A stretch of 64,000 nucleotides of DNA from Octopus sinensis (GCF_006345805.1 NC_043008.1:49662001-49726000); one strand, 5' to 3'; counted from the stretch's first letter, positions 3,112-60,300 are shown. The notes: generated from the sequence alone by a model not told the origin. Made by a program: numbers and translations.

Positions 3112-4504
3112 CTGAAAAGAAGAAACCAAAATCTAAATTAAGGAACTAAATTTTCAAATATTTGTTTATTTGAAATTCTGTTTTAATCTGTAAATTTTTG
3201 TCAAGACTACAATTCTTATCATTTCAGTGGTTCCCAATATTGGAACATGGCTATGCCGAGGGGATTCTATTAAGGGTTGCACTTAATTATATTGATGACA
3301 TCTTTGGCACTTATTTTATTGCTCCCTGTCAAATGGCTACAATTTTAGAATACAGGCATAAGGAGATATAAACTTGACAATTAATATCATTTATTTATCA
3401 CTTACTGGAAAATTACATTACTAATTCTACTGTCTGAAATTGTAATTTATAATGTCTAATATCATTTACATTAATGTCTCAATATTTGATTCATAATTCT
3501 ATTCTTGAGGCTATTTCTTGTTGCAAACATTGAATCAAAGGAACACACCTTGCTTTAATGGACAATAGTATAATAACCCAGCCTGCTAGCACTAAGTGAC
3601 TGATGAATTATCTTGTGGAAATTGAGTAATACAGTTAAAATAATAGAAACAAGTTTGTTCATTCATTTAACATGTTTTTTTTTTTATATTCTAGCATGAG
3701 TTAGATAAGGAAATATTTGAGGCAAGAATTTATGGTTGAATGCTCATCCAGTTCCCAGGTTAAGGGACATTTATTTTCCTAAGTTTTTTTGGAAGTGCAG
3801 AGTGAATAGTTACAATGTGAACATCAGTACTTCTTGCTCACATGATGACTACTGAAATGCTTGTGCACACAGACACACATGGCGATGGTCTTACTACCAC
3901 CAATGGAATTCACTCAAAAAGCATTGGCTGGCCAAGGGCAAAAGCAGAAGCTGCTAGCTCAAGGTGTTGTATAGAAGAATGGAACCCCAAACCAATTGCT
4001 TATCAAATAAATGTCTTAAATACACTGCAATTCCTGCACCAAATATCAAGTTGGCACACTAAGAATGAAACCCAGGCTGCTTGAAAAAATGGTGTGGATC
4101 CTGTTAAAGCATCTAATTTGATGTTAAAGGGAATGGCAGTCCCCTGCAGTGTAATCAGAAGAGCGGTCACCCAGCAAATGACAGATATGGAGTTCATATG
4201 CCATGAGGGAGACTGTTGTTGACTTCAGTCTCAAATCAGAATTTTAAAATGTCAAATATTAAAACAGTTAACCCTTCAGTATTTAAACCAGCCATTTCTG
4301 GCCCAATTATTCTTCCTGTTTTATGCTCAAACTGGTCATAGCAAGCCTCTCACACCTGCCCTACAATGTCATTCTAAAAATAAACAGTTACTTCACTGAA
4401 ATCTGAAAGCTGCACGATAATGCATAAGTAATTCAAAACAATGTGAATAAATAAGCGTTAGATTTGACGGAGTAATCTGAATGCTAAAGGGTTAAGTCGC
4501 TTAC

Positions 4505-4593
4505 CTTAAAATAATGAAACATATCAGCTTCTTTCTCAGCGCCAATCACATGAACCACCAATTGTTTGGGAAGTTCTATGCCAAAATTTGGAT
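4505..4593 (-). CDS. ZMYND15: ZMYND15-like exon (YPNFGIELPKQLVVHVIGAEKEADMFHYFK)
   Basis: ctgtag acceptor and AAG|gtaagc donor, 89 nt, phase 1 to 0. HVIGAEKE matches the family motif HVVEAGKE. Confidence 0.88.
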
Positions 4594-5601
4594 CTACAGT
4601 TTGGAAAGAAAGGGAATATTTACTCCTAAATAACAAGGTTATGCTATCATGAATAGTTATAACAACACAAGAACTAAAATATGAAAACATCATAAATATC
4701 CTTTCTATTATAGGCACAAGGCCTGAAATTTGCGGGGAGAGGCTAAGTTGATTACATCGACCCCAGTGCGTAACTGGTACTTATTTAATCAAACCTGAAA
4801 GGATGAAAGGTAAAGTCGACCTCAGCAGAATTTGAACTTGGAATCTAGCGGCAGACAACATCATAAATATGACATAACAAAGACAGGATGTTGGTATTGA
4901 CAGAAATAGCAACACAACAAAGATATGAGATTAACAAAGACTTAGTAATATCATAAATGTGACACAAGAAATATAGGACATCTTCATTTACAATAATAAC
5001 ACCTCAATAAATGCTGGTGGATGAGGGGACATTAGAAAGACAAACTATTAAAACAAGAAGAGGTTTTATTTAGGAGCCAGTCTGGGAATAAAGGCAGGAA
5101 AACCAACAAGGCCTAACAACATCATCATCATCATCGTTTAACGTCTGTTTTCCATGCTGGCATGGATTGGACGGATCAACTAGGGTCTGGGAAACCAGGA
5201 GGATGCACCAGGTTCCTATCTGATCTGGCAATAGTTCTACAGCTTGATGTCCTTCCTAACGCCAACCACTTCAAGAGTGTAGTGGGCGTTTTTTACGTGC
5301 CACCAGCACAGGGGCCAGTCAAGGCAGCGCTGGCATCAGCCACGTTCGGGTTAGCTACTTTGAGAGAAGTGGATGGTGAGTCGTTTAGATTCTGAGTTCA
5401 AATTCTGCCACAGGCAACTTTATCTTTTATCCTTCAGGGGCTGACAAAGTACAAAATGAAGTACATATAAAGTACTAAGCAACTTACTTCCCTTCCTGGA
5501 AAATTGCTGGCCTTATGCCAAAATGAAAAGAAACCATTATGTAAACAAACAAAATCACACACACAATAAAATTGAAACCAAAAAAAATCTCTGTTCCTTA
5601 C

Positions 5602-5832
5602 AATGTAGTTGAAGACATGAAGTTATGATGTAAAAAAGGGTCAAAGGGTAGGTGAGGAGGATAGCAATGGGGCTGTCGAGGCTAAATGAACGCCATTTGT
5701 AGTAGGAAAACCAGTTGGCAATGTCCCCTATCTCTGTTTGCTGTGCGTGTTGTAGCTGTTTCAATCCTGATGGACATCCAAGTTCTCGTTCTTCGACCAA
5801 AACAAATGGAAAATCAACTTCTGTAAGTTCAC
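5602..5832 (-). CDS. ZMYND15: ZMYND15-like exon (..NWFSYYKWRSFSLDSPIAILLTYPLTLFYII..)
   Basis: attacag acceptor and T|gtaagg donor, 231 nt, phase 1 to 1. Near-identical to the recalled ZMYND15/MSS51 motif SWQDYYTWRGLSLDSPIAVLLTYPLTVYYVI. Confidence 0.92.
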
Positions 5833-6111
5833 CTGTAATCAATAACAATACAAATTAAGTTCACCTATAATTAATATATACATAAGAGTAAGGCGGGGAG
5901 CTGGTAGAAACGTTAGCATGCCAGGCGAAATGCTTAGCGGTATTTCATCTGTCTTTATGTTCTGGGTTTAAATTCCACAGAGGTCAACTTTGCCTTTCAT
6001 CCTTTCAGAGCTGATAAATTAAGTACCAGTTGCGTACTGCAGTTGATCTAATCAACTAGACCCTTCCTCCAAAAATTAGGGCCTTGTGCCTAGAGTAGAA
6101 AAGAACATATA

Positions 6112-6271
6112 CATAGGAGTGGCTGTGTGGTAAGAATCTTGCTTTCCAACCATATGATTCCAGGTTCAGTCCCACTGTATGGCACCTTGAGCAAGTGTCT
6201 TCTACCATAGTCTCGGGCTGATCAAGGCCTTGTAAGTGGATTTGGTAGATGAAAACTGAAAGAAGCCTGTC

Positions 6272-6310
<39 letters not shown>

Positions 6311-6520
6311 TGTGTGTGTATTTGTGTGTCTGCGTTTGTCCACCCACCTTTGCTTGACAACCGATGGTGGTGTGTTTACGTCCCCATAACTTAGCGGTTC
6401 GGTAAAAGAGACCAATAGAATAAGTAGTAGGCTCACAAAGAATAAGTCTTGGGGGTTGATTTGCTCGACTAAAGGTGGTGCTCCAGCATGGCCACAGTCG
6501 GGTGGCTGAAACAAGTAAAA
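6112..6520 (+). mobile_element. SINE family A copy
   Basis: Colinear with 13945-14345. Confidence 0.85.
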
Positions 6521-7075
6521 GACTACCTCAGAGAGGGGACAACAAGGAACTGAGACTCCTGTGGTGTGCTTTGCTTGAGAAGAGACATGAAGTTAAGTGA
6601 AGTTGTGGTTGTCTTTGCATTTAGGCATGTCTCCTGCACTCCTCTCCAGCTGAGCTATCTTAATCTTGCAGGCCTGTGGGTGCTGGGTGCCACATAAAAG
6701 ACATCTGTGCTGGTGCCACATAGAGGCACTCATGGTGGTGCTGGGTAAAAGAGCACCCAATACACTCTGTAAAGTGGTTGGTGTTAGGAAGGGCATCCAG
6801 CTGCAGAAACCATGCCAAAACAGACATGGAAGCTGGGCAGCTCCTGTCAAACTGTCCACCTCATGCCAGCATGGAAAACAGACATTAAATGATGATGACA
6901 CACACACATGTATACATAAACATACATACACACACATGTACATACACATATGTATATACATACACACACATATATACATACACACACACACACATACATA
7001 CACACGGCCCCTCTAAAAAAAAAATGAATAAATATATCTGATATTCATCTCATAATGATACAGCTTTACACTCAC

Positions 7076-7198
7076 CATATTCCCAAACTGAGAACTGCTT
7101 TGAAGGACATTCATAGCGCCAAACACCAATATTGTAAACTCCATGAAGAACCAGAAATTCTTGATATTTTTTGGGTGTGAAATCTTGAGATGTAGTCT
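7076..7198 (-). CDS. ZMYND15: ZMYND15-like exon (ETTSQDFTPKKYQEFLVLHGVYNIGVWRYECPSKQFSVWEY)
   Basis: tctttctttag acceptor and ATG|gtgagt donor, 123 nt, phase 1 to 1, open frame. Resembles recalled EVTSETFNKEAFLASRG. Confidence 0.85.
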
Positions 7199-7424
7199 CT
7201 AAAGAAAGATAATTGTTAATAATTTCAATTTGTACAAGAAATTAATACTGATTTCGAATTTTGGCACAAGGCCAGCAATTTAGGGGGCGGGCGGTTAAGT
7301 CAACTAATTCAACCCCAATGTATAACTAGCATTTATTTCATCAACCCCGAAAAGATGAAAGCAAAGTTGGCCCCGCTGGAATTTGATTGCAAATAGTAAA
7401 ACAAGAAATTTATATTTTTTTTTA

Positions 7425-7780
7425 ATTTGTTTCAGTCATTTGACTGTGGCCATGCTGGAGCACCACCTTTAGTCAAGCAAATCGATCCCAGCACTTATTC
7501 TGTCGGTCGCTTTTGCTGAACTGCTAAGCTACAGGGACGTAAACATACTAGTATCAGTTGTCAAACGATGTTGGGGGGTGGGACAAACTGACACACAAAC
7601 ATATACATATATACAATGGGCTTCTTTCAGTTTCTGTCTACCAAATTCACTCACAGGGCTTTGGTCGACCCGAGGATATAGTAGAAGACACTTGCCCAAG
7701 GCGCCACACAGTGGGACTGAATGCAGATCCATGTGGTTTGTAAGCAAGTTACTTACCACACAGCCACTCCTGCGCCTATA
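7425..7780 (-). mobile_element. SINE family A copy
   Basis: Reverse complement is colinear with 13945-14345. Confidence 0.85.
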
Positions 7781-8366
7781 TTAACATGAAAAATAAATAT
7801 CTTTTCAGTAAATGAATGATAGTGAAAAGGGAGGAGGTGAGGTAGAGGGATGAGCGATGACTAATTCAATATTCTGATACAGAACTAATTTAACTGGAGA
7901 AAGGATCTTGGGTTGTCATGGCAGCAAAATAAAATTATATGTGCGAAATACCTGTTTTTGCAGTAGAAGGATATAAGAATTATTAGATGGAAGACCTGTT
8001 GAGGCAAGACTGGGCCTGGTGCAGCCTCCTGGCTTCCCAGACCCCGGTCGAACCATCCAACCCATGCTAGCATGGAAAGCAGACGTTAAACGATGATGAT
8101 GATGATGATGGCAGCAATTACCACCACCATTTAATGCCCTCTGTTCCATGCTGACATAAATTGGACAAGAACAGACAAGCCAGTAGACCAAAAATGAGTT
8201 CCAGTACCTGTGTCAACTCCTTTACAAAGTGTACTGCGTGCTTTTTTGGTGGCACCAGCACTGGTGAGGTCACCAAGTACCAGCAAGACAGGACAACTAC
8301 CCCACTCCAAGTGAGCGGAGTATTGTGTTGGGGGGATATGAAAGTATGAAGTGGAGGTGAATACGT

Positions 8367-8417
<51 letters not shown>

Positions 8418-8780
8418 GGATGCCCTTCCTAATACCAACCACTCAGAGTGCAGTTGGTGTTTTTTACATGCCAGTCAGGCGACACTAGCATCAACCACAC
8501 TCGAATGGTGCTTTTCACGTGCCACCAGCATGGGTGCCAGTCAGGTGGCACTGGCATCAGCCATGACTACAATTTCATTAGATTCAAATGAAGCATGCTG
8601 CCCAAACAGACAAGAAACACCAAAGTGACTCTCACAACATGATCTTTCAGTACCACATTATATCACTCAACCTTTCTGCTTCTATCTTACTTTTACCTTT
8701 ATTCATAAATCTTATAAATAATCTACCCCATAGCATTAATACTAATGAATAAAGTAAGAAATAAATATATAAAAAGCCAC

Positions 8781-8950
8781 CTTTATTATAATTAAATGGA
8801 AGATCAGCCAAAGTGTCTGTGACTTCTTGGTAAGTCTGCATTTTGAGGCACCATTCTTGATGAGAACTTTTGGGATCTCCTGGCACTAGACCATTCAAGT
8901 CTATCAACTGGCACTTCTCACTACAATATCTCACAGACTTGCATTGATTG
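8781..8950 (-). CDS. ZMYND15: ZMYND15-like exon, second half of MYND finger (CNQCKSVRYCSEKCQ...HQEWC...LADLPFNYNK)
   Basis: ttttgtag acceptor and AAG|gtggct donor, 170 nt, phase 2 to 1. Shows MYND C-x2-C-x5-C-x3-C...H-x3-C and LADLPFNY matching recalled ZMYND15 LATLPFTY. Confidence 0.9.
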
Positions 8951-11198
8951 CTACAAAAAAAAACAAACAAGGAAATAACAATGACAATAATAATCTTTTG
9001 TATTATAGGCACAAGGCCTGAAATTGGGGGAGGCGGGGAAGGGGGGGCTAGTTGATTACATCGACCCCCAGTACTTGACTGATGCTTATTTTATCAACTT
9101 CCCACAAGAGTCCATGCTGTTGGAGAAGGAATGTAATTAATTTTGGTATAACACATCAAAGCTAGATCAATTGTGACAATAATTAACGAATGCTATCTAC
9201 TCTGAGAGTGGAAAATTAAGAATATCACCAAGTTATAATTCCATCATGACCATCATCATTTAACATCCGTTTTCTATGCTGGCATGGATGGTCTGGCAGG
9301 AGCTGGTAAGCCAGAGGACTCTGCCAAGCTCCAATGTCTGTTTTGGCATGGTTTCTGCAGCTGGATGCTCTTCCTAATGCCAACCACTTCACAGAAAGAT
9401 AGACGAAATGATGATTAGTATTTTGCTTAGCATGCTAATGATTCTACCAGTTTCAAAGTTAATTAAAACAAAGACAGCGTATTTTAACAGAAATATGGTA
9501 ACGAAAGGGTTAAAACGAACCATTGCCAATTCAAAGCAAGATCAATAATTTCAAAATGAGACTTGGCTACTTCATAGTGAGAACAGCATTTTCATAGTGA
9601 GATCAACTCAAAAGATATTTATATAATAGAAAATATAACATTAAAACATCATTTACTCATAGATTTTGTGAAAATCCAACCTCGTCTTCGTTTATCTTCA
9701 AGGAGGTGACAGGCTGATATTTTTTTTTACGAGGTAGAAATTGACACAGACTATCAACATTCATATTACATCTATCACCTTTGAGTAAGACTGTTCATTT
9801 TCCTGAATTTATAAAGTCTAAAATTATTCTATCTGTAGTCTTCAGATTAATGACTATGGATTGAGCAAGGTCCTTGAAATTTGATCAGGGAGCATAACAA
9901 TCTAAGAATCGACGGCAAATACTGTTTAAACATGACATCTTCGTTGCACAGAAAAATTAGTTATACAGGGGAAATAACTCTGTAATTACTTCGTTGGTAG
10001 TTTCACTGCGAATCATTGACAAAAGAAAACCGGTTTTTCGTTTCTGTTCAGGGTTTAAAGTGAATTTTTCGACTTACAAAGTCTTCCAGGTTGCATGTGC
10101 CGTTGGTGAAAGTACAAGATTCTTGCCTAATTAAATCAAATTTCTTTTAAATGATAATCGGTTACTTTCAAGTGACATATGCTGTTCATTTAAGACTGTT
10201 TTTACTTTATAGAATAAACAAGATCATTATTGCTTTTGGACTAATTCTTTTGTTGTTGACGCTATTTTCCAGATCTCCAGCCATTTAACCCTTCCAATAT
10301 ATTGTTTGCCTTTTTCTCTCGAGAAGAGTAACACACGGGATTTTAGTTCCAAGACTCTAAACTCTGTGCTCCCTACAAAAAGACCACTTTATAGATGTGC
10401 ATGTTTTGCTTGCCACCACTCCAGCCTCTGGCTGTCGCCTCACTCTACTGTTACTACTTTGGCCACTGCTTCTGTAGAGCCACCCAAGTCTACTATCTCA
10501 TTAGTCTCTCATCACTGACATTGTGTCTTATCACCAGGACCTGCAGACATTATGTGCACAGCCCTCAATTTATAAATTTAGTAGCATAATTTGTCATCAT
10601 CGTTTTACATCTGTCTTCCATGCTGGCATGGGTTGGACGGTTTGACAGGAGCTTGCCGGGCAGAAGACTGCACCAGGCATTTGTGTCTGTTTTGGTAGCT
10701 GGATGTCCTTCCTAATGCCAAAAACCCAGCAGAGTGGACAGAGTGCTTTTACGATATCATCATCATTGTTTAATGTCCACCTTCCATGCTGGCATGAATT
10801 GGGCAGTCTGACAGGAGCTGGCCATGCAGAAGACTTCCCCAAGCTACTGTGTCTGTTTTGGCAGGGTTTTTACAGTTGGATGTCCTTCCTAACATCAAGC
10901 ACCCCAAAGAGTGAACTGAGTGCTTTTTATGTGGCACCAGCACTAATTACAATGATATACTGGTATATAGCTTATTATTAGGTAATTATACTACTTGAAT
11001 AACAGATACGACATGACAATATAAGCCTAATTAGTTTCTGTTAGGATTTATTTGTATTTGCACTGTTTTGCTTTTTTCCTTAAATCATTTTTAATTGAGG
11101 AAATCGTTCAGTGGCACAGTGGGCAATTACCCATAAGTAGCAGAAATATAGGAGCAATTATTAGGAGATAGCTTGCCCTAGAAGCTCAAGAGACTTAC

Positions 11199-11351
11199 CA
11201 AGTCTGGAAGTAATCTGGTGTTGCTCTGATATGACAAGTACTGCACTGATAGAACAAGGGAGTCTGAGAACGAGCTGGAACAACGACGTCACTGCCATAG
11301 AATATCGGAAGACAAATCTCATCCAGTTTGCTGTGTCCTGATTTCAAACGT
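11199..11351 (-). CDS. ZMYND15: ZMYND15-like exon, first half of MYND finger (..YQCSTCHIRATPDYFQTC)
   Basis: ctcattgcag acceptor and TG|gtaagt donor, 153 nt, phase 2 to 2. The split TG|C codon supplies the third MYND Cys. Confidence 0.85.
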
Positions 11352-11929
11352 CTGCAATGAGAAACACAAAGAATATGGATGAAATAGAATTTTCATTCGA
11401 CACACCAACCTGGCATCAGCTTTCACAACTAATTATATTCTAAAACCACAAAATGCAATACAACTGAAACAGAATTACAGCTTCATGCATTCCAATATTG
11501 GGGGTTTTATACATGAAGTACAAACTAGGCACAAATGTAGTCTGTGCAGTTAGAAGCTTGCTTCCCAACAACATGGTTCCAGGTTCAGTCCCACTGCATG
11601 GCACCTTGGGCAAGTGTCTTCTATTATAGCCTCGAGCCAACCAAAGCCTTGTGAGTGGATTTGGTAGATGGAAACTAAATGAAGCCCTTTGTATATATGC
11701 ATATCTATGTATGTATATCTTTGTGTCTGTGTTAGTCCCTAACCATTGCTTGACAACCAGTGTTGGTGTGTTTACATCCCTATTGTATTAGCAAAAGAAA
11801 CCAATACAATAAGTACTCCATTTAAAGAAAAAAGAATTGGGGTTGATTCCTTTGATTAAAAAGAAATTCAAGGTGGTGCCCCAGCATGGCCACATTCTAA
11901 TGACTGAAACAAGTAAATGATAAAAGATC

Positions 11930-11966
<37 letters not shown>

Positions 11967-12499
11967 AAATCTTTTATCTTTTGTACTTGTTTCAGTCATT
12001 TGACAGCAGCCATGCTGGAGCATCACCTTTAGTCAAACGAATCGACCCCAAAACTTATTCTTTGTAAGCCTAGTACTTATTCTATTGGTTTCTTTTGCTA
12101 AACCTATAAGATACAGGGATGTAAACACACCAACATCGATTGTCAAGCAATGGTGGCAGAGACAAAAACAGAAACACAAATACATATATATGTATGATGA
12201 TGATCATCATCATTTAACGTCCGTTGTCCATGCTGGCATGGGTTGGATGGTTTGACTGGGCTGGCACGTTGGAAGGCTGCATCATGAAAAAGTCTGATTT
12301 GGTATGGTTTTCTACAGCTGGATGCCCTTCCTAATATAAACCACTCCAAGAATATAATGGCTGCTTTTACATGCCACTGGCACGAATGCCATTTGCGTGA
12401 CACTGGTATCTGCCATGTCTGCGATTTTGCTCAGCTTCATGGGTTCTCCTATGACAAACGAACAACATTCACACCAACAGAAAAAAAAAAAAGACTTAC

Positions 12500-12698
12500 T
12501 GGAAGAGGTCAGCTGAGTTGCAAGTCAAACAACGAGGTTTGCGGGATTTTCCTTTGAGAGGGTGCAGCATGGCTTCACTTAGAAGGTAAAAGATAGAAGA
12601 AAATTCTAGAGAAAGCATTGACTCAAAAACAGCACTTGTCAACTGTAAACCTCTTTCATCTTGGATGGAAAGAATTAGAGCAGTTTCTTCTTCTGAAT
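12500..12698 (-). CDS. ZMYND15: ZMYND15-like exon (DSEEETALILSIQDERG...AMLHPLKGKSRKPRCLTCNSADLFQ)
   Basis: tctttcag acceptor and CA|gtaagt donor, 199 nt, phase 1 to 2. Resembles recalled ZMYND15 LLLVTDEHG...SMACPMGSGDPRKPRQLTV. Confidence 0.8.
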
Positions 12699-13090
12699 CT
12701 GAAAGATATGGAAGCACATATAATATTATATAACATCATACAGGGTGTCCCAAAAGTCACTGACGGGTTTCAATTTTTTATAACTTCCTTAACTCTACAA
12801 ATATAAGCATGAAATTTTGATACACTTCTTTATGCAGCTGCATCACATGACCATACCAGCACAGTCTTCTCTCATGCACACTACATCTGATGTCTCATAT
12901 GTGTGTGTGTTTGTGTGTGTAGTAACAGTTATGTAATCATGTGTGTGTGTGTGTGTAATGTATAGTAACAGTTATGTAATCAGGTAACTTCAAAATGTTA
13001 CACTGCTCTAATTAAAAGTATTTAAAGGCTGAACTTATTGTATTAGAAGCCATTTTGAGATAGAAACAAAAAATACCCCAAACCCCTCAC

Positions 13091-13944: not shown

Positions 13945-14345
13945 CGCAGGAGTGGCTGTGTGGTAAGTAGCTTGCCTACCAACCACATGGTTCTGGGTTC
14001 AGTCCCACTGTGTGGCATCTTGGGCAAGTGTCTTCTGCTATAGCCTCGGGCCGACCAAAGCCTTGTGAGTGGATTTGGTAGACGGAAACTGAAAGAAGCC
14101 TGTCGTATATATGTATATATATATAAGTGTGTGTGAATATGTTTGTGTGTCTGTGTTTGTTCCCCTAGCATTGCTTGACAACCGATGCTGGTGTGTTTAC
14201 GTCCCCGTCACTTAGCGGTTCGGCAAAAGAGCCGATAGAATAAGTACTGGGCTTACAAAGAATAAGTCCCGGGGTCGATTTGCTCGACTAAAGGCGGTGC
14301 TCCAGCATGGCCGCAGTCATATGACTGAAACAAGTAAAAAGAGAA
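13945..14345 (+). mobile_element. tRNA-derived SINE family A, well-preserved full-length copy
   Basis: Head aggagtggctgtgtggtaag..ggttcagtcccac (A/B boxes), internal (TA)/(TG) tract, tail tgactgaaacaagtaaaa. Other copies at approximately 1465-1825(-), 11545-11925(+), 11975-12175(-), 13470-13925(+), 42370-42575(+) and 63465-63625(+). Confidence 0.85.
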
Positions 14346-16138
14346 AAAAAAAGATATATATATATATATACATACATACACACACACTAAGTTTCTTGCT
14401 GAGCTTGCTACCATCTTAGCATTGCTTGCCATATCTTTGTACATGTCTGGAATGGTTCATACAAAAGAATTATCTACAGCATGATTTCCAGCGTGCATTA
14501 GGCTGTTAAACACCTGTAAAGTAGAAATGTTCGTTCTTAGCTAAGTACTTCTCTTATAGTTATTTAACTATAAATATTCCGTCTGTCTCTAAATCAACAA
14601 CTTTCAAGACTTGATCCATCATCGGTCCATAACCTATGTAACTGGTCTATCTGTTACCTTTGTATTTCTAGCAGTAAACAATGGCAAAAGTACGCCACCC
14701 ACACCTTCATTCTCAACATTTCCGCTGCTATCCGCCCTGGAGCGGCTGCTTTCCCCGTCTTCTTGATTTTTTAACTGTTTACAACCCTGAATCTAAGGTC
14801 CTTCATTTGGTCCCGGGGAAGTGTTCATTGTCTAAAACGTCCTTAGTTTATTATTATCGTATTTAGATATAAGAAAAGTGAGAAATCTACGATAAATACG
14901 GAAGCGCATTGGTTCAAAACGACAGAATAAATACCTTTATGTATCACATACGTCCGTTATGTTCTGAGTTGAAACCCAAACCTCGTCAACTTTGTCTTTT
15001 TTACTTCTGGAATCGAAAAAATGGTTAATGTTTACTTGTGAAATACTGGTATCAATTTAAACGATTAACAAATCGCTAGCCTTTTCATAAAAGCGATCCG
15101 TTCGCAGTTGTATGACGAAATTTTTGAGACTTCATGAAATAAATTGAAATCAAAATGGAATTTTAAAAACTTGTGTTAGGAACGGATTTTTTTTCATGCT
15201 ATTATTTCAGCTTAACAAGTCCTTTCACTCTGTTAAGTGTTGTATTAGCTATTAATCTACTCTTAACATCAATGTTCCGTTGTAGAATGACTATTATTTC
15301 TCCGAAAAGTTATTCAACAACGATCATCGTTTCTTAGGACAGAGAAATAAAATAATATAAAATACGAATAAATGCAATACGAACGAATCTGACATGAAAC
15401 ATTTTCTGAAGAAGTTGCCTCCCTGGTTTACAAAACTAATTGACTTGAAAGCTATTCATTTGTTTATAAATGTAGGGACATATTTAGAAGAATTAAAGAA
15501 ATATATATATAGTGAAGAACAAATCAAAATAAAAAAAAGGAGGGGTTAGTTTCCAGTTAAACATGTGATTTAATTAATTTTGCATTGAGCAAAAGGTAAA
15601 AAAAAATAAAAAGACACAGCAATAGTGGAGAATGTCAGAAAAAACCCCGCCAAAAAAGAAAAAACGAAATGAAATAGGTATTTTACTGCTTTCGTTTCTC
15701 TGCACCACCTTGAAACAAAAACCATTTGATTAACTTAATATATTAGCTTTGCTGAAAACAAGACATTTCTTATAAAATCAAATATCTTGTTAAATTAAAA
15801 ATTAAACAAAAACATAATATTTGAAAGTTTTTGAAAGTGTTATTTATGAATGGCAATGCTATGTCTTTCTCCCGACCGGAGTTAAACTAGATCAAAACAA
15901 CCATAAATATACATAAGAAATTGCAGATTGTATATATATATATATATATAATCTGCAGATTTTAGCTAAATGATGAAATAAGCTAGAAGTAATTAATGAT
16001 TTAGCAATTTTGAATTATTTATTTATTCGTTTCGGCAATTCAATTTTTTTGGCTTCTCAATCGTGGATGGTTTCTTTTGTAACTACGCCGCATTCTCGAG
16101 AAGTTTAGCAGAAAGTTTTTCTCCAAATTATTTTAATT

Positions 16139-17080
16139 ATGACCGAACTATGTGAACGTGGGAGACCGAAAGCTCGGGTAAAAATCGTGGACGAGATCAT
16201 TAATAAAGAAGATCTGATTCAAAAGGAATACACGCTACACGATATTCAGCAGGTAACTAAGGATATTGACTGTACAATTAAATTTCTTGCATCGGTCGGT
16301 TTACTTCACAATTCGGTGACATGTTGCGACCGGGCAATGGGTTTTGTGATTCGTAAACGATATTCAGATGGAAGAGCTTGGCACTGTTCAATATGCAGGT
16401 CTTATCGCAGCATTAGGAATGATTCTTTCTTTTCTAAGTCTTGCATCCGTCTGACCCGCCTTCTTGAACTTATTTATTGGTGGACGTCAATTGAGTCCAC
16501 GCAGTCTGTTGTTATGAATCAGGTTGGTCTTGGTTCAGAGGCCATAGTTAATTGGTATAACTATTTTCGAGATGTCTGTGCCATGTGGTGCATCGATCAC
16601 CCTACGAAGATCGGAGGAGAAGGAGTGAAGGTGGATATCGCCGAGTCAAAATTTATGCACCGCCAATATCATCGTGGTCATTATAAGGAAGGCCATTGGA
16701 TTCTTGGGATGGTGGAGCGCCACAGTCTTAATTCCGTCCTTGTACCTGTCCCTGATCAAAGTGGTGCCACTTTGCTACCGATCATCCTTAAACATGTGTT
16801 GCCAGGCACCTGCATAGTAACGGATGGTTGTCATTCCTATGAAAAGCTTCCAGAATCAGCTGATCACTGTCTTCAGTTCATGGATGCTAAAGACGAAAAA
16901 CTCAACAGAAACACAACAGAAGGGACGTGGAATAACGTGAAGAACAAATATAAACATTTGTATGGACCTTCCGATAATCTGTTCTCGACTTACCTGCAAG
17001 AATTCAGTTGGCGTCGTGTTCACAAAAATAATACATTTATGTCATTCATCTTCTGGATTCGGCATTATTACCCTGTCTAA
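16139..17080 (+). CDS. Merlin / ISXO2-like (IS1595-family) transposase-derived protein, 313 aa, intact ORF, first catalytic Asp replaced by Ala
   Basis: N-terminal zinc ribbon (TCC..M..DG.AWHCSIC..RSIR..SFF). DDE-region motifs GGEGVKVDIAESKF (family V(E/D)IDES), VTDG, TTEGTW and YLQEFSWR. No stops or frameshifts; no TIRs found. Confidence 0.9.
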   Translation: MTELCERGRPKARVKIVDEIINKEDLIQKEYTLHDIQQVTKDIDCTIKFLASVGLLHNSVTCCDRAMGFVIRKRYSDGRAWHCSICRSYRSIRNDSFFSKSCIRLTRLLELIYWWTSIESTQSVVMNQVGLGSEAIVNWYNYFRDVCAMWCIDHPTKIGGEGVKVDIAESKFMHRQYHRGHYKEGHWILGMVERHSLNSVLVPVPDQSGATLLPIILKHVLPGTCIVTDGCHSYEKLPESADHCLQFMDAKDEKLNRNTTEGTWNNVKNKYKHLYGPSDNLFSTYLQEFSWRRVHKNNTFMSFIFWIRHYYPV

Positions 17081-17993
17081 TGATTTATTTTACTGGTAAA
17101 AAGCCATTTTTTAAAATCCATTTCTGACTTTGGCGCTATTTTCGGATTACGGGTCCCGTCCATTTATTGTGATAAACTTGAAAACCATGGAAGATAAAAT
17201 CAAGAATGTAAATAATTTTATCATTGATTACTTTCGTTCTTTCAATGCAAACAAATATTGATGGCGAGGAATATTTTTGAAATTACGCGTAAAAAAACAA
17301 AAACAAGAAGTCCTGCAAAAACAAATAAACTATTTTTTTATATTCATCTAAAATTCGTTTTCGTTTTTCAGTTTTATTTCGCGGGTATTTTATATACATC
17401 AAATGATCACCGGTGCATGCTGTAGTTTAAAGAGGGTGATCTTGGAGTTTAGCGTTTCACTTAGATTTTGGTTAGTGAGCAGCTAATTTCAAAGTGCAAG
17501 TGAAGCAGTTAACAATAGATAAAACAAATAAGGGTAACTGACGCCAAAACAGTTAATATTTTAAAGGGATTGGTAGAATAGGTAGATGAGACTTTTCGGT
17601 ATGTCGTGACGCCCATCTACATTCATGAATTTAAAGACTTCTGAGGTCAGCTTCTCCTTCCATCCTTGAGCTATCGATAAAATAAGTGGAATCGATACAA
17701 CCTCTCCGTAAAATATCGATAGGTTTGTGTCTGGCAATCACTATTATCGTCTTTACGATGTTTATAATATTATGAAACACCCAAGCCTAAAGAATTAAGA
17801 AGAGCTGCGCCTCTGTGTTCCAATAACACCAAAAGTCTTGTGTTCAGGTGAAATAAAATATATATATATATATAATGGTTAAGTCCTATTTTAGCGTACG
17901 ATTAAAAATGGTAAAGTCTTATTTTGGGGTGCAATAACGACGGTAAACTTTGTGGTAAAAAATAATGAATTTGTTGGAATATATATATATATA

Positions 17994-18225
17994 CAAGGTT
18001 GGCCAAAAGTCACCAGGCAGTAAATTAAAACCATTTAATTCCAAGATTTATTTATGTTTACCAACTGAATGAATTTAATAAAAGCATCTCAATATGCAAC
18101 ATCATGAAAATTGTTCAAAGTGAAGTCCTTCTTGAACGACACATTTTCCCATTCGAGTCAATACAGAATTACAAATAGTATTTATGGAATTTTGATTTAC
18201 TGTCGGGTGATTTTGGCCCACCTTG
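17994..18225. mobile_element. Tc1/mariner-type MITE, 232 bp, inserted in (TA)n
   Basis: TIRs caaggttggccaaaagtcacc..cagtaaat and atttactg..ggtgattttggcccaccttg, flanked by TA. Confidence 0.85.
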
Positions 18226-18269
18226 TATATATATATATAATAATATTAATTTCTACCCTCATTATTTAA

Positions 18270-18413
18270 CAAGTAGCTTGCTAACCAACCACATGGTTCC
18301 GGGTTCAGTCCCACTGCGTGGCATCTTGGGCAAGTGTCTTCTGCTATAGCCCCGGGCCGACCAATGCCTTGTGAGTGGATTTGGTAGACGGAAACTGAAA
18401 GAAGCCTGTCGTA

Positions 18414-18497
<84 letters not shown>

Positions 18498-18715
18498 AAC
18501 AAACGGGGGGGTATATATGTGTGTGTTTGTGTGCCTGTGTTTGTCCCCGATGCTGGTGTGTTTACGTCCCCGTCACTTAGCGGTTCGGCAAAAAGAAACC
18601 GCTAGAATAAGTACTGGGCTTACAAAGAATAAGTCCCGGGGTCGATTTGCTCGACTAAAGGTGGTGCTCCAGCATGGCCGCAGTCAAATGACTGAAACAA
18701 GTAAAAGAGTAAAAG
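18270..18715 (+). mobile_element. SINE family A copy, young, with expanded (TA)n
   Basis: High similarity to 13945-14345. Confidence 0.85.
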
Positions 18716-37221: not shown

Positions 37222-38070
37222 GGGGGTACACAAAAGAAACCGGAATTTTACAATATGATTTTATTCACTTAGTTTTACATGTTTAAAGCAATACATCAGT
37301 CCAGACATGTCTTTCACTGTTTGAAGCAGTGCTGGAACTCTTTTAACACCTCTGTTGTTTTTTTTGTTCACCTCTTCCACAACTGCAAATTCCATAGCAC
37401 CAGCTTTCATACCAGTGATGACCTTCAAAAAAAGGTCCAGATCAATTTCCCACTCTCTTTTCAGTTCATAACACACATTCAGTTGTGACTGCTTTTGATC
37501 TTTCATAAGCAAGCGAAGTACAAATTTTGTTGCAACTCTTTCCATTTGCAATTTGTTGTCAAAAATTCGTTGGCAGGAGCTCCAGGACACACAAGTCATA
37601 TCAACAAGTTCATCAATTGTTCGATGACAGTCTGCCAAGATCAGTTCATGAATTTTCATGATATTTTCATTCATTCAGGAGGTTGATGGATGTCCTGAAC
37701 AACGTTGGTCTTCAAGCAACAAGTGGCCATTCCTAAAACATGAAAACCACTCATAAACTTGTGTCTTGCTCATAGCAGCTTCCTTGTAAACTGTTTGTGA
37801 CATGATAACTGTTTCAGTCACTGTTTTCCCCAGTAGAAAACAGTATTTCACAGAATCATGCTGTTCTTTCATTTCAACCAACACAAAAATCAATGAACAG
37901 GGGAGGATCACTGCACAACATAGATGCTCCACGTAGCAGTATGACCACACCCAACAATACCAGTTGTCAGACTGATGTCTGAGAGTCATATCAAGTGGCT
38001 TTTAGTGATGGAAGCCTGAACTACAATGTGCTTGTCCCACAGAGAATGTTTCTGGCTACTTTTGGGTACT
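37222..38070 (-). mobile_element. Mariner (Tc1/mariner) transposon, internally deleted pseudogene
   Basis: HTH ...KYCFLLGKT...VYEWFSCFRNG..LED..SGHPSTS and VATKFVLRLL...FLKVITG. Degenerate TIRs gtac.caaaag.a.cc.gaa at both ends. Confidence 0.85.
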
Positions 38071-47852: not shown

Positions 47853-50776
47853 CTCATTCACACACGCACGCAATCATGCACGCAGTCACGCAAGCACGCA
47901 CGCACGCAGTCACGCACGCAGGCACTCAGACACGAACTCACTCACGCACTCACGCATTCCTGCAGGCATGCACTTACGCCCGCATGCGCTAATGCACGCA
48001 CTCACGCACGCACGCACTCAGACACAAACGCACTCACGCACGCACTCTGACACGAACTCACGCACGCTCGCATCATGACACGAACTAACGCACTCACTCA
48101 CTTACGCACGCATTCACGCACTCTCTCACGCACGTATTCACGCAAGCACACACTCACGCAGGAATTTAAGCAGGCACTTACGCACGCTCTCACACACGAA
48201 CTCACTCACTCATGGACTCACGCGCGAATTCGCTCACGCACTCACGCTCTCACACTCTCACGCACGCACTCAGGCAAACACGTACTCACGTTCGTAAGCA
48301 CTGACGCACTCACGTACACATGCACTCACGCACGCACCTGCGCATGCACTCACGCACGAACTCATTCACGCACGCAAGCAAACACTCATGCACGCAAGCA
48401 AACACTCACGTACGCACTCACGTAAACACTCACGCACACACGCATGCACATATGCACGAACTCACTCACGCAGGCACTCACGCAATCACGCATGCATTCA
48501 GGCAAGCACGTACTTACGCACGCACGCATGCATCCACGCACGCACGCACTCACGCACGCATTCATGCACTGACACACGCACGCACTCTGACACGAACTCA
48601 CGCAATCACGCACGCACGCACTCTGACACGAACACATGCACGCACGGGCGCTCGCACGCACTCACGCACCATGACACGAACTAACACACGCACTCACTTA
48701 CGCACGCATTCACGCACTCCCGCACGCACTCACTCACGTATGTATTCACGCAAGCACACACGCACACACACGCATTCAGACACACACGCACGCACACACT
48801 CACGCATGCACGCACGCACGCATCATGCACTCACACACGCACGCTCGACCGCACGCATTCACGCACGCATTTTCGCACGCATACACCCACGCACGCATAC
48901 ACCCACGCACGCAATCACGCAAACATTCCCGCACACCACGCATCCGTGCATGAATGCACGCACTCACACACGTACGCAAGCATTCACGCACTCACGCACA
49001 AACTCACTCACGCAGGCACTCAAGCACGCACTCTCGCACGCAGGCACTCACGCAGACACACAAGCACGAACTCACTCACGCATGGACTCATGCACGAACT
49101 CACTCACGCACGCACTCACGCGGGCACCTACGCACGCTCTCACACACTCAAGTACGCACTCAGGCAAGCACGTACTCATGCACGCATACACTCACGCATT
49201 CATGCACTCATGCACCCACGCACGCACTCACGCATGCACGCACGCATACACTCAAGCACGAACGCACTCACACATCCATGTACTCACGCACGCACGCATT
49301 CACCCACTCACGCAATTACGCAAACATTCACGCACGCACGCCTGCACTCACGCACGCACTCACGCATCCGTGCACTCACGCACGGACTCACACACGAACT
49401 CACGCACGCACACACGCATGCATTCACGCACGCACGCACTCACACACTCACGCACGACGGCACTCTCGTACTCGCACACGCGCACGGACGCACTCTCGAT
49501 CGCACGCACTTTCGAACGCACTCAATCACTTGCACACGCACTCACGCACGCACGCATTCACGCACGGATTCACGCACTCACTAACTCATGCACGCATACA
49601 CTCATGCACGCAGACACTCAGACACGAACTCACGCACGCACTCATGCACGCATTCCCGCACACATGCACTTACGCACTCAGACACGAACTCACTCATGCA
49701 CGCACTCATTCACGCACTCACACACGCACGGACGCACTCCCGCACGCACGCTGACACGAACTCACGCACGTACACGCGAACGCATTCAAGCAGGCACTCA
49801 CGCAGGCACTCAAGCACGCCCTCACACAGGCACTCACGCACACACAAACGCACTTGCGCACGCAAGCACTCACGCACGCACTCACACACACACACGCACT
49901 CGCGCACGCAGGCACTCACGCGCGCACTCACGCGCGCACTCACGCGCGCACTCACGCACGCACTCACTTACGCATATATTCACGCACGCACACACGCACG
50001 CACTCACGCAGGCACTCAGACACGCACTCTCGCACTCAGACACTCACGCAGACACTAACGTACGCACTCACGCACGCTCTCACATATTCACGCACACACT
50101 CAGGCAAACACGTACTCACGCACGCAAGCAGTCACACACGCACGCATGCACTCACGCATCCATGTACTCACGCACGCACTCACGCACTCACTCTCGCACG
50201 CACTCACTCACGCACGCAAGCACTCACACACGCACGCATGCACTCACGCATCCATGCACTCACGCACGCACTCGCACACACACGCACTCACTCAAGCGCG
50301 CACTCACGCACGCACGCATTCACGCACGCACTCACGCACGATCTCACACACTCAGGCAAGTACGTACTCATGCACGCACGCACTCACACACGCTCGCACG
50401 CACTCACGCACTCACTCTCGCACGCACGTACTCACGCACTCACGCACGCAAGCACTCACACACGCACGCACGCATGCACTCACGCACGCACTCACGCTCG
50501 AACACACGCACTCACTCACGCACGCATTCGCGCACTCACTCTCGCACGCACGTACTCACGCACGTACTCACGCACGCACTCACTCACGCACGCTCTCACT
50601 CACGCGCGCACACACTCACGCACGCATGCATTCACTTACGCACGGACGCACGCACTCACACACGCACGAACTCACGCACTCCCGCACGCACTCGCGCTCA
50701 CACACACGCACTAAGACACACACTCACGCAGGCACTCACGCACCCACTCACGCACCTACTAACGCATGCACACACG
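47853..50776. repeat. 2.9-kb degenerate (CACG/CACT)n CpG-rich satellite
   Basis: Continuous gcac/tcac/acgc tetramers with interspersed higher-order motifs. Confidence 0.95.
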
Positions 50777-50789
50777 TTTATGTATATAT

Positions 50790-51975
50790 ATACAGGAATT
50801 CCTAAAAGTCTATTCCCAATTTAACACAATTTTCATTTCAAATTTAACCCATTAAATATTGTGTGAGCCCAGACTAAGCTTTGAACAAAAATTAATTTCT
50901 TCCACGATAATACTGGAAGTTTGGGAGCGTGTTTTAAAAAGGGTTCACTACATGACTTACTACCATTAAAGATGAGTTTTGAAGCCAATGGGTCTGTTCA
51001 GAATGTCCACAAGAAATATTCCAGAAGACTATAGACATTACTGAGTCACACAAAGCAAGAAAGTGCACTAGAAACATATTGCCAGAATATAAGAAAATCT
51101 CTGGCAAGCAAGTCATGAGACGTTTGTTTCAAAATCAAGTGTTCATCACATTTTCAAGTGCTGTCAGTGGAAATGTTACATTCCAAGAATAGTCCATGTT
51201 CTCAATGAAGATGACCCAGAGCAAAGAGTGGAGTTTTATGAGCAGTGCTTTGTAAGATGTGTATGAGCTGCACATTTCCAACAAAGATTGTTTAGAGTGA
51301 TGAGGCTACATTTCAATTAAATGGCCTAATTAACAACCATAATTGCTCCTACATATATTATAGAAAAATATCATCTTAACTTACTTGAAAGTGAAGTATG
51401 GTGCAATTTATCAGGAAAAGGGTTAATTGGACCATTCGTTTTTGATCATACTGTGACTCATCCCATTTACTTGAACTTGGTGTGGCAATATATCATGCTA
51501 AGCACTCAAGTGGACTTTGAAGATGCTTTATTTTCATCAAAATGAGTCACTTCAACACTTCCATAGTTATATAAGAGCCTACTGGGATGACATTCTGTCA
51601 AACAGGTGGATTGGAAGAGGAGGTTCTGTAGAATATCTTCTACATTCACCAGACCCTACTCCACTTGACATTTTCTTAAGGGGATACTTAAAAGATAATG
51701 TCTACAATACAAAATTAGCAGCCGTTGATAACCTGAGACTAGACATTGAACAAAATTGTACAGAAATACCAAATGAAATGTATTTTTGATACGTTGCAAC
51801 TTCATAGCTCCAAGTTATCAGCAGTGCCTGGGGCAGAATGGTCATCATTTTGAGAACAGGCATTCATAAAAAAATTAAATATTTGAATTCTATGCATCTT
51901 TTTCCTTAAGTTTCCTTATTTTCAAATTTCAGATACTGCTTTGAATTATTACAAAATGGTCAACTCCCTTGTAAT
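50790..51975 (+). mobile_element. Tc1/Tc3-like DNA transposon relic (DUF4817-HTH type), degenerate
   Basis: NRWIGRGG...SPDPTPLDIFLRGYLKDNVY motif; starts TACAGG after (TA)n. TIRs were not resolved. Confidence 0.75.
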
Positions 51976-57363: not shown

Positions 57364-60300
57364 ATAATAATAATAATATTGTGTACAGTGCTCAGGTGCA
57401 CTACAACTCATCTAAAGTGTATATATAATCAGGTGTAGTTTCGGCGGATTTCGGAAAGCATGAGGGCCTTAAAAGATGCAGTGTCATGGCAGTCAACAAC
57501 TGACGCAGGCAGTTTATTCCATGCTTCAGCAACTCTGAGCGTGAAAAAATGTTTCCGAAAGTCATGGGAGCTGTATTGTTTTCTGACTTTGTAGGCATGT
57601 CCACGTGTGTTAGACACATGAAGATCAAAAAGGTGTTCAGTGTTGTTGTTGGTGAGGTGGTTGATAACTTTGTGGGTGTTTACCAAGTCCGTCGCCAAAC
57701 GCCGGAGCTTCAGTGAATCCATGCCCAGGGAAACAAGGCGCTCAGAATATGGTAGGTGTCTGATGGAGGGTATGCGTTTGGTTGCACGTCTCTGGACAGA
57801 TTCCAGGAGGTCAATGTTCTGTGCAAGATAGGGGTTCCAAACTGATGATGCGAATTCCAAGTGTGGTCGTACCATAGCTGTATACAGTTTTAAATAGATG
57901 GCTGGAGAGCGGCTAACAAAAGACCTGCTGAGTGATGCCAAGACACCCTCGGCCTTCCTGACAATCTTAGAGATATGCTTTGACCAACGCAAATCACTGC
58001 TGACAGTGATGCCTAGGTCACGCTCGCAAGAGGATTTCTTGATATCAGTGTTGTGGAGGGAGTAAGTGAACGCAGGGTTTTTTCTCCCAAAATGCATGGT
58101 GGTACACTTGTCCACAGCCAGTTTCAGTTGCCAGTCTGTGATCCATTGCTGCATTGTGTCTAGGTCTGATTGCAGGAAAGAGTTGTAGACATCAGGATCT
58201 GTCCTCTTGATTTCAAGGTACAGCTTGATGTCGTCTGCATATTTCAATACTATGGCATTCTTTAAATTGGCATCTATGTCGTTAATGTATGCCACAAACA
58301 AGAGGGGACCAAGGACAGATCCCTGTGGTACACCCGATGACATCTCATATGGTGTAGAGTGCTGTCCTAGAACTGTGACTACCTCCTTTCGGCTGAGGAT
58401 GAAGGATTTCAACCAGTTAAAAAGGTCATCCCCAACACCCATTGCAGAGAGTTTCACCATAAGCCTTTTGTGTGGCACAGAGTTGAAAGCCTTAGCAAAG
58501 TCAAGGTAGACAACATCCACCCATGAGCCACTGTCAGTAATCTGAGTAATGTCCTCAAGGAACTCGACAAGCTGGTCACTGCAGCTGGAGTTAGGGACAA
58601 ATCCATATTGTGAGGGTTGGATGAGACTGTGAGAGCTCCAGAAGTTCCAGAGTGTTTCTCTGACACACGATTCCATCAGTTTTGCAATACAGCTAGTGAG
58701 ACTGACTGGGCGATAGTTGACAGGTGATGTGCGGTCGCCCTTTTTGAACAGAGGAATGACACTGGCAGTTTTCCACTGCTCCGGAGTAGCACCATTGTTG
58801 AGACAGTACTGGAAGAAAATAGAAAGCTGGTGTAAAAGGAAGTGCCTGCCACGTTTGAGAAGCAGGTATGTAACTCCATCGAGACCAGGGGAGGCATAGT
58901 TGCGCTTATTTTGAAGGTGACGTCGCAGCATTGCAGGTGTAAATTCCATAGTTGTTATGGAGTTTGCTGTTAGTGATGGTGAAGATGGTACATTTTGACT
59001 TTCAACAGTGAATATGTTTGCATAGTACTCGGCAATGAGTTCTGCGCATTCCTTGGGGTCGTCAGTGATCTGGTTTGTGTGAGGGTTGCGAAGAGGGCCC
59101 ACTGGAGAGTGAGGTCTCTGCTTTGAGTGCATATTTCCAGAAAACCTTGCTGTCAGGATTGGCTGCTATGCACTGTTCAAATTCAAGCACTGCTTTTTTT
59201 GTCACTTGCTTGCTTGAGATGGTTGGAGGATTTATTCCGCTTCTTCCTGTTGGTGTCTGATTTATGCAACCTGTATTCCCGTTCAGCAGTCCGACGTTCC
59301 CTCCTGGCAAGTCGGACCGCTGAAGTTTCCCAAATTGCCCTTTTGGGGCGGTTCTTCTTTTTTGTTTACGTGGCACAGATGCTGCACATGCTGCCCATAT
59401 TGAGTCCAGGATACTGGAGTATAGTATTCACATCTCCAGAGTTGTAGAATTCACGCCAGTTTGGGTGCTGTAGTTCAGTGTGGTACAGGTTCCAATCTGC
59501 TCTCTTCCAATCGAAGGAAGCAGATTGTAGATGGTTCAGGTTTTCGTTGCCCGCAAGAGCCAGATTGGCGATGATCATAGCATGATCAGAGTCACCTAGA
59601 GGTTCCTCCGTAGTGCAATTGATAACCGCTTCAGGAGTTGTGGTGAAGAGCAGGTCCAAGGTGTTGTCGCCTCTTGTTGGAGAGGTGACTACTTGTGACC
59701 AGTTTGAGTCCAGCACAAGCTCAACAAAATCGTTTGCACTCTGTGGCCAATGGAAGGTCTCCCAATCGATCTCAGGATGATTGAAATCGCCTGCAATAAA
59801 CACATAAGTGGCTGTTTTCCTGGCAGCAGCTCGGAGGACATTGCAAAGCTGTGTGTCCCGATGGTAACTTGGGGGACGATAAACAACGCCAAGCAGGAGT
59901 GTTGACATGGTCATACACACGTCACAAAAAAAAACTTCTTGTGATTCGTTCAAATCGGCACAAGGAATTACCAAAAAATTTGAACGAACGTAGACCATCA
60001 CACCACCACCACGGCGGTTAGTGCGGTCCTTACGGAAGAGGTTGTACCCCGTAATGTTGAAAACCCCATCACAGAGTAAGGAATGCGCCCATGTTTCCGT
60101 GACAGTGATGAAGTCAGGGTCAACACTTCTGACGTAGGCGTTGAACAAATGTATTTTGTTGCATAAACTGCGAGCATTTAAGGACAACAATTTGTACCCT
60201 GCTCGCAGTTTATGATGGTGTGTAGAGGATGGCAGGTTGTTCTGGCTTAGTTTCCCTGAGTTGCTGTAGTCTTTTTAGTTATTGTGGGTAGAGAGCACTC

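Follow-up and report, generated by a model that had tools for sequence, protein, structure and literature searches.

A probably domesticated Merlin transposase gene, one of two old paralogues, in Octopus sinensis

New DNA-binding and recombination proteins have repeatedly arisen from domesticated transposases. Among the DDE transposases that were domesticated in animals are catalytically inactive ones, such as the pogo-derived proteins of the CENP-B/TIGD/POGZ type, and truncated or inactive transposases can act as repressors, e.g. KP of the P element. The link of the Merlin superfamily to domestication has so far been tentative and restricted to protists, where TIR-less but conserved Merlin-related ORFs of Stentor, Symbiodinium and Bodo saltans/Perkinsela have been proposed to be domesticated (PMC8101967). 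Mobile Merlin elements possess TIRs of 24–462 bp, which begin with 5'-GG, and TSDs of 8–9 bp (PMC8101967). The same survey reported 191 Merlin sequences for O. bimaculoides and names no higher count for any other bilaterian that it covered. Our literature search for a Merlin-derived host gene in animals found none, and Merlin is not mentioned in a survey of transposon-derived transcription factors that includes O. bimaculoides.

The window, by which we mean the whole stretch of 64,000 nucleotides of Octopus sinensis DNA that was analysed, contains at 16139..17080 (+, coordinates including the stop codon) an uninterrupted and intronless ORF of 313 codons for a Merlin/IS1595 transposase of 313 aa, which represents paralogue A of a Merlin-derived gene pair A/B. 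An earlier reading of the same DNA (hereafter the sequence-only reading) had already described this open frame, and indeed neither strand has another ORF of 60 aa or more between 15000 and 18500. An in-frame TAG is found 33 nt 5' of the ATG, so that the frame cannot extend further upstream without splicing. The GC content is 0.40–0.46 within the ORF versus 0.23–0.33 in its flanks. The protein matches Pfam PF12762 (DDE_Tnp_IS1595, 'ISXO2-like transposase') with E=1e-15 and 58.5 bits (cut-off 27), and it reaches 48.8 bits with the NCBIfam IS1595 model NF033547, which is under the equivalog cut-off of 75. An exhaustive HMMER scan yielded 6148 relatives at E<=1e-3, and residue conservation was assessed in an alignment of the ORF protein with 113 near-full-length relatives. 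The following features were located within the ORF:

16322..16396 (+): zinc-binding module CC-x19-CxxC (C62, C63, C83, C86), all cysteines kept
16631..16648 (+): VDIAES on strand beta-1, with Ala168 replacing the first catalytic Asp
16640-16642 (+): GCC codon of residue 168, Ala here, Asp in 99 of the 113 relatives
16823..16825 (+): second catalytic Asp, D229, within VTDG, retained; Asp in 103 of 113
16853..16867 (+): ESADH in place of the family motif NHxxVNH, two residues shorter, with V changed to A and N to D, His243 kept
16904-16912 (+): NRN in place of the family motif HTN, Asn258 kept
within 16904..16942 (+): catalytic Glu, E261, within TTEGTW, retained; Glu in 102 of 113
within 16904..16942 (+): K268, retained; Lys in 101 of 113

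The DDE triad of the protein is incomplete, as position 168 is Ala, with D229, E261 and K268 present. Within the zinc module, C62, C63 and C83 are Cys in 109–111 of the 113 relatives, and C86 is Cys in 94 and His in 9. These alignments agree with the sequence-only reading as far as the GCC-coded Ala of VDIAES in the place of the first DDE Asp is concerned, as well as the preservation of the zinc cysteines, VTDG, TTEGTW and YLQEFSWR. Two further statements went somewhat too far: an H..VNH motif had been called missing and an HT(Q/N) motif replaced by NRN, and while ESADH and NRN do stand in these places, H243 and N258 are retained.

An AF2 model of the protein (22-sequence alignment; pLDDT 84.5, pTM 0.80) displays the element order of an RNase H-like fold, with beta-1 (residues 164-173, including A168), beta-2, beta-3, a helix and beta-4 (225-228). 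D229 follows directly after beta-4, E261 and K268 are situated on a helix formed by residues 260-272, and short beta-hairpins extend across the zinc module (residues 61-91). A Foldseek search of the model against the PDB retrieved the catalytic cores of retroviral integrases and the Mos1 transposase, whereas nothing in the PDB was matched by the family profile at the sequence level. Together, the element order and the Foldseek matches put A168 in the place of the first catalytic DDE Asp, and the RNase H fold, which had earlier been named as a point to be checked by modelling, is recovered.

The best database match of the window protein is a 313-aa protein of O. vulgaris and O. sinensis (P0001, 89% identical), accompanied by a 313-aa protein from Logan run SRR11869394 (P0002, 86% identical), and the next relatives are just ~55% identical. 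In addition, the 90% cluster of P0001 holds the O. vulgaris protein CAI9731413.1 (P0177), which is 99% identical to the window protein, as well as a 313-aa protein (P0178) and a 188-aa fragment (P0179) from O. bimaculoides. Two types can be distinguished:

Type A: the window protein, P0177 and P0179; 97.9% identity between O. vulgaris and O. bimaculoides over 188 aa, the 188-aa model P0179 being the sole representative of O. bimaculoides A
Type B: P0001 and P0178; 95.5% identity between O. vulgaris and O. bimaculoides

A and B proteins are ~89% identical to each other, which is less than the identity of either type between the two species, and the duplication is therefore older than the split of O. 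vulgaris and O. bimaculoides. On the O. vulgaris chromosome OX597825.1, B is located at ~76.5 Mb (locus L001) and A at ~79.97 Mb (locus L008). In O. sinensis, B corresponds to the RefSeq model XP_029643493.1 (LOC115217914), and an A-like copy is present in the Logan contig L003, again from run SRR11869394, which represents a third and more distant species. Literature searches for this run and for the protein accessions found nothing. Counting the annotated proteins, there are two loci per genome. The single copy which the sequence-only reading had named as support for domestication is hence replaced by two old paralogues, which are separated by ~3.5 Mb of the same chromosome. In ~190 kb of octopus DNA (the rest of the window and ~125 kb of other sequences), there is no further copy of the flanks or of the CDS, with the exception of CDS matches of 65–67% to distant paralogues.

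The altered motifs VD(I/V)AES, ESA(D/G) and NRN are common to all seven proteins, which represent four species or more. Six of the seven have His243, and O. bimaculoides B (P0178) has Arg instead. The codon of Ala168 is GCC in 5/5 DNA copies, so that the conservation of the Asp-to-Ala change, likewise put forward at the outset as a mark of domestication, was in fact observed.

Both copies seem to have exchanged sequence. The window differs from O. vulgaris A at 17 sites, and at 16 of these it has the base of paralogue B. At seven of those sites O. vulgaris A has the base of L003, and these sites are clustered:

window 16489-16552: clustered sites, CDS nt 351-414
window 16663-16690: clustered sites, CDS nt 525-552

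Furthermore, O. bimaculoides A shares the residue of O. vulgaris A at 4/4 amino-acid differences (127, 133, 181 and 270). Judged from these sequence patterns, it looks as if A and B exchange sequence by ectopic gene conversion in spite of the ~3.5 Mb between them, in which case the A–B distances given below would be slightly too small and some of the comparisons blurred.

The surroundings of the ORF were compared with the O. vulgaris loci and with L003, and the features referred to in the following are:

4487..12735 (-): MSS51-like neighbour gene (zf-MYND and MSS51_C), head-to-head with the ORF
within 4487-4780, 5558-5854, 8650-9090 and 12499-12735 (-): candidate exons of the MSS51-like gene
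14657..15258 (+): A-specific upstream flank, common to L003 and absent from B
15259..17300 (+): block of ~2.1 kb shared by A and B, matching L001 9123-11095, with ragged edges and no TIR
16010..16138 (+): conserved proximal 5' block of ~130 nt in A, B and L003, TCGTTTCGGCAATTC ... GAAGTT..AGAAAGTTTTTCTC ... TTTTAATTATG
17324-17329 (+): AATAAA, 245 nt past the stop codon

The window and the O. vulgaris A locus are collinear across the 20.9 kb compared, with 95–98% identity and a mismatch rate of 1.46%; the B loci of O. vulgaris and O. sinensis differ by 0.44%. The DNA of the window thus derives from a species that is very closely related to O. vulgaris. In O. vulgaris, the upstream neighbour of A is encoded on the opposite strand, comprises 538 aa with zf-MYND and MSS51_C domains, and its annotated CDS starts 728 nt from the ATG of A, the first exon of this annotated gene looking like a weak ab initio call. 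In the window, an exon with half of the MYND finger is found at ~8.7–8.9 kb, the start of MSS51_C at ~4.5–4.7 kb and the first CxxC of the finger at ~12.5 kb. The neighbour had previously been taken for ZMYND15, and a MYND gene does adjoin the ORF, its domains being those of an MSS51-like protein; the proposed recurrence of the locus beside such a gene in another octopus is evident, for this close pair of species, from the collinearity with O. vulgaris. A homologue search with the concatenated MSS51-like exons (window 4487-12735 (-) / L008 1-9273) retrieved no protein, either because the annotated model uses other exons or because the word index misses it. By tblastn, no MYND exons were detected within 10 kb on either side of the paralogue B loci, because B is a different locus.

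Nearly the entire length of L003 can be matched to the window, from 14657 to 17326. Since this includes 600 nt or more of upstream flank which is absent from B, L003 is regarded as a positional orthologue of A. Beyond the A/B block, sensitive searches on both sides revealed just microsatellites and a dispersed SINE-like repeat. Downstream, L003 and B can be aligned ~35–50 nt past the point where the window diverges, and as the divergence points thus differ from pair to pair, the edges of the block are ragged, unlike the sharp common termini of a transposon. The ~130-nt block directly 5' of the ORF is, from its sequence conservation, a candidate promoter or 5' UTR. The AATAAA, which the sequence-only reading had pointed out at 17324, is present, but it is conserved only in O. 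vulgaris A and is absent from B and L003.

No TIR had been visible by eye, and this was substantiated by searches for inverted matches. Within 3 kb on either side of the ORF, these matches were copies of the SINE-like repeat or chance matches of 10–15 nt. At the edges of the A/B block there were no inverted matches, and at the edges of the B block not even an 8-mer. With the edges being ragged, no element termini could be defined at which an 8–9-bp TSD would be recognisable.

The SINE-like repeat itself (GGTGCTCCAGCATGGCCGCAG...TGACTGAAACAAGTA) occurs in many copies and both orientations, e.g. at 13945-14339, 18271-18715 and other positions of the window and at L001 12230-12640. Its copies in opposite orientations account for the only long 'inverted repeats' around the ORF. 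As candidate TIRs, TA microsatellites, SINE-like repeats and chance matches were all rejected. Within TA repeats at 17980-18239 of the window there is a MITE-like unit, the 29-nt arms of which (..CAAGGTTGGCCAAAA / TTTTGGCCCACCTTG..) are 97% complementary and lie 202 nt apart.

The missing ends bear on the possibility that A and B belong to a Merlin family of low copy number which is mobile now or has been until recently, perhaps non-autonomous and moved in trans, with TIRs too degenerate or too short to be recognised and with coding constraint that reflects transposon-level selection. The ~2.1 kb of the A/B block are a typical size for Merlin, two copies per genome among the annotated proteins are compatible with such a family, and Merlin sequences are indeed numerous in octopus, as the 191 of O. 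bimaculoides illustrate (PMC8101967). Nevertheless, all copies have lost the first catalytic Asp and have the surrounding motifs altered, no inverted match of at least 10 nt links the flanks and no 8-mer the B block edges, and the edges are ragged in a manner that differs between copy pairs. In addition, A resides at the same locus in the window and in O. vulgaris, and L003 contains the A flank past the block. We therefore consider a mobile family unlikely and favour the domestication of an immobile gene. Nonetheless, the A/B block is of the size of a Merlin element, and the duplication may itself have been an old transposition in trans.

The statement that every other transposon of the window is riddled with stops was too sweeping. 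At 57429-60190 (-) there is a nearly intact and possibly young LINE, in which ORFs for an endonuclease (Exo_endo_phos, 274 aa) and a reverse transcriptase (RVT_1, E=2e-37, 567 aa) are preserved. A mariner-type remnant at 37261-37989 (-) contains a Mos1 HTH_48 domain (E=2e-9) and consists of adjacent ORFs of 104 and 137 aa that are split by a stop. An 834-aa 'ORF' at 48320-50824 (+) was rejected as a gene: it is a degenerate tandem repeat, almost entirely of T/H/A/R/S composition and with several overlapping ORFs in other frames, which lacks stops by chance.

Among the other Merlin copies of octopus, P0005 has an intact DDE site, and identical coding sequences for it are found at three loci (L004, L005 and L006; gene 5001-5918) on CM016860.1 and CM016861.1 of O. 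sinensis and on OX597829.1 of O. vulgaris. Each of these loci is part of a segment of at least 8 kb, and the segments are ~99.5% identical mutually; no TIR was detected within a few hundred nt, and a 42-nt imperfect hairpin spans the stop codon. The P0005 loci may have arisen by segmental duplication, or they may belong to a composite element of larger size. The closest O. bimaculoides copy, P0003 (L007), reads VELLES instead of VEIDES.

Constraint on the coding sequence of A and B is apparent from both indels and substitutions. There is not a single indel across the 942 nt of five coding sequences, as opposed to 27 indel events in 1.29 kb (A versus L003) and 19 in 0.84 kb (A versus B) of the homologous upstream flank, a rate at which ~20 indels would be expected in 942 nt. 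The substitution distances of flank versus CDS are 0.25 versus 0.12 for A–L003 and 0.42 versus 0.08 for A–B. Pairwise Goldman–Yang (GY94) likelihood estimates, with a likelihood ratio test (LRT) against omega=1, were as follows:

A–B: omega 0.38, LRT p=2e-4
A–L003: omega 0.25, LRT p=2e-10
B–L003: omega 0.37, LRT p=2e-6

The Nei–Gojobori dN/dS values of 0.20–0.30 are in agreement with this. In neutral simulations with substitutions only, a lineage kept its frame open with a probability of 0.03 (d=0.1) or 4e-4 (d=0.25), and no fewer than three lineages have to be considered here. A dN/dS well below 1, which had been named beforehand as support for domestication, is therefore found (0.25–0.38, omega=1 rejected), with the qualification that the control Merlin pair discussed below gave ~0.3 as well.

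These data speak to the further alternative that A and B are dead relics without host function, the frames of which stayed open by chance and were perhaps kept alike by A/B gene conversion. The first Asp is absent from ~9% of the other near-full-length relatives as well, as would be expected of decaying copies, and signs of gene conversion do exist. But the LRT rejects omega=1 for every one of the three pairs, with or without L003, the CDS has zero indels instead of about 20, and once d reaches 0.1 the simulations give each lineage no more than a 0.03 chance of an open frame, with three lineages or more involved. Gene conversion can homogenise both copies, yet it cannot clear stops and frameshifts from both of them. 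Chance survival as relics is thus improbable, somewhat more so than a mobile family, and the retention of A and B as domesticated genes fits these observations better.

The other octopus Merlin ORFs P0005/P0003, taken as a control, have an omega of ~0.3 too. This is what a mobile family of the kind described above could show, and it follows that an omega below 1 alone cannot tell a host gene apart from a transposon lineage that is selected for its ability to transpose. On the other hand, selection on the CDS at the level of the transposon is of no benefit to a protein which cannot function as a transposase. The case for domestication is consequently based on a combination of the shared dead site, the missing ends, the fixed loci and the retention of both paralogues. 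Taken together, we conclude that the ORF is probably a domesticated Merlin transposase gene, one of two old paralogues, a conclusion that is well supported, but not proven. Of the sequence-only reading, the domestication proposal as such stands, given the conserved Ala, the omega below 1, the CDS free of indels, the absence of a TIR and the corresponding locus in O. vulgaris, but the gene is not single copy.

The constraint is not evenly distributed, with an omega of 0.16–0.26 in the C-terminal, dead catalytic core versus 0.39–0.52 in the N-terminal half. A further alternative is that the protein still acts as a nuclease or recombinase, but through an active site that has shifted. Such a site might use Asp166, which precedes A168 by two residues and points to the same side of beta-1, in combination with the invariant Glu169. 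The family residue at 166 is Glu, and E166D is a clade-specific change which accompanies D168A; D229, E261 and K268 are still in place, and constraint is strongest in the core (omega 0.16–0.26). As the neighbouring active-site motifs are altered as well (VNH to ADH, HT to NR) and there is no sign of mobility, we regard a shifted site as very improbable, the least probable of the alternatives considered here, and prefer to see A and B as domesticated proteins with an inactivated nuclease.

According to the domestication reading, a Merlin gene would have turned immobile, without terminal repeats and at fixed loci, and would have lost the first metal-binding Asp of its DDE site. As far as can be predicted from the sequence, this loss makes DNA cutting very probably impossible for the A/B protein. 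Octopus species would then have kept the gene as an open and constrained reading frame. The protein may still bind DNA through its zinc module and core and may multimerise as transposases do. Its action would not involve cleavage and would most likely be that of a regulator which binds specific DNA sequences. As constraint is strongest in the core, the activity under selection probably depends on the complete transposase architecture, i.e. DNA-end binding or multimerisation, and not on the N-terminal DNA-binding domain alone. This would fit a protein that inhibits Merlin transposition competitively or as a dominant negative, or one with a regulatory role via Merlin-derived sites. A role as Merlin repressor or DNA-binding regulator, which the sequence-only reading had brought up as well, is nevertheless purely conjectural. 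In its full form, the suggestion would be that A and B represent the first host genes of Merlin origin to be described in an animal, with products that are nuclease-dead and sequence-specific DNA binders on Merlin ends or Merlin-derived sites, e.g. dominant-negative Merlin inhibitors or regulators that act via dispersed Merlin remnants; we put this forward tentatively, as a doubtful possibility that is still somewhat better placed than a mobile family.

The octopus ORF resembles the transposases of Merlin and of the bacterial IS1595/IS1016 elements in that it belongs to PF12762, is a single intronless ORF of ~300 aa and has an RNase H-like core in which D229, E261 and K268 are preserved, and the N-terminal CC...CxxC module of animal Merlin relatives is present in A and B too. 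In contrast to these transposases, the first Asp of A and B is Ala and the VNH and HT motifs are altered, and in contrast to mobile Merlin elements there is no 5'-GG TIR, nor a definable terminus at which a TSD would be recognisable, and both genes appear to occupy fixed loci that are common to species. The closest analogues described so far are the Merlin-related ORFs of protists, which are preserved without TIR and TSD, show synteny between related species and were amplified in a way that resembles segmental duplication and not transposition (PMC8101967). These ORFs belong to ciliates, dinoflagellates and kinetoplastids, whereas the octopus case concerns an animal, i.e. a cephalopod, and the selection has been quantified.

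If true, the constrained but nuclease-dead Merlin pair of octopus would add this superfamily to the animal list, with the tractable question of why a dead catalytic core is conserved more strongly than the DNA-binding end. The general importance of the finding is for now modest. A host genome with unusually abundant Merlin elements makes the case more useful. Like the proteins of the CENP-B/TIGD/POGZ type and like KP, A and B combine a transposase fold and a DNA-binding module without a complete triad, with lost transposon ends and with purifying selection. They differ from them in that they derive from the Merlin superfamily, are not fused to a host domain and are so far limited to Octopus.
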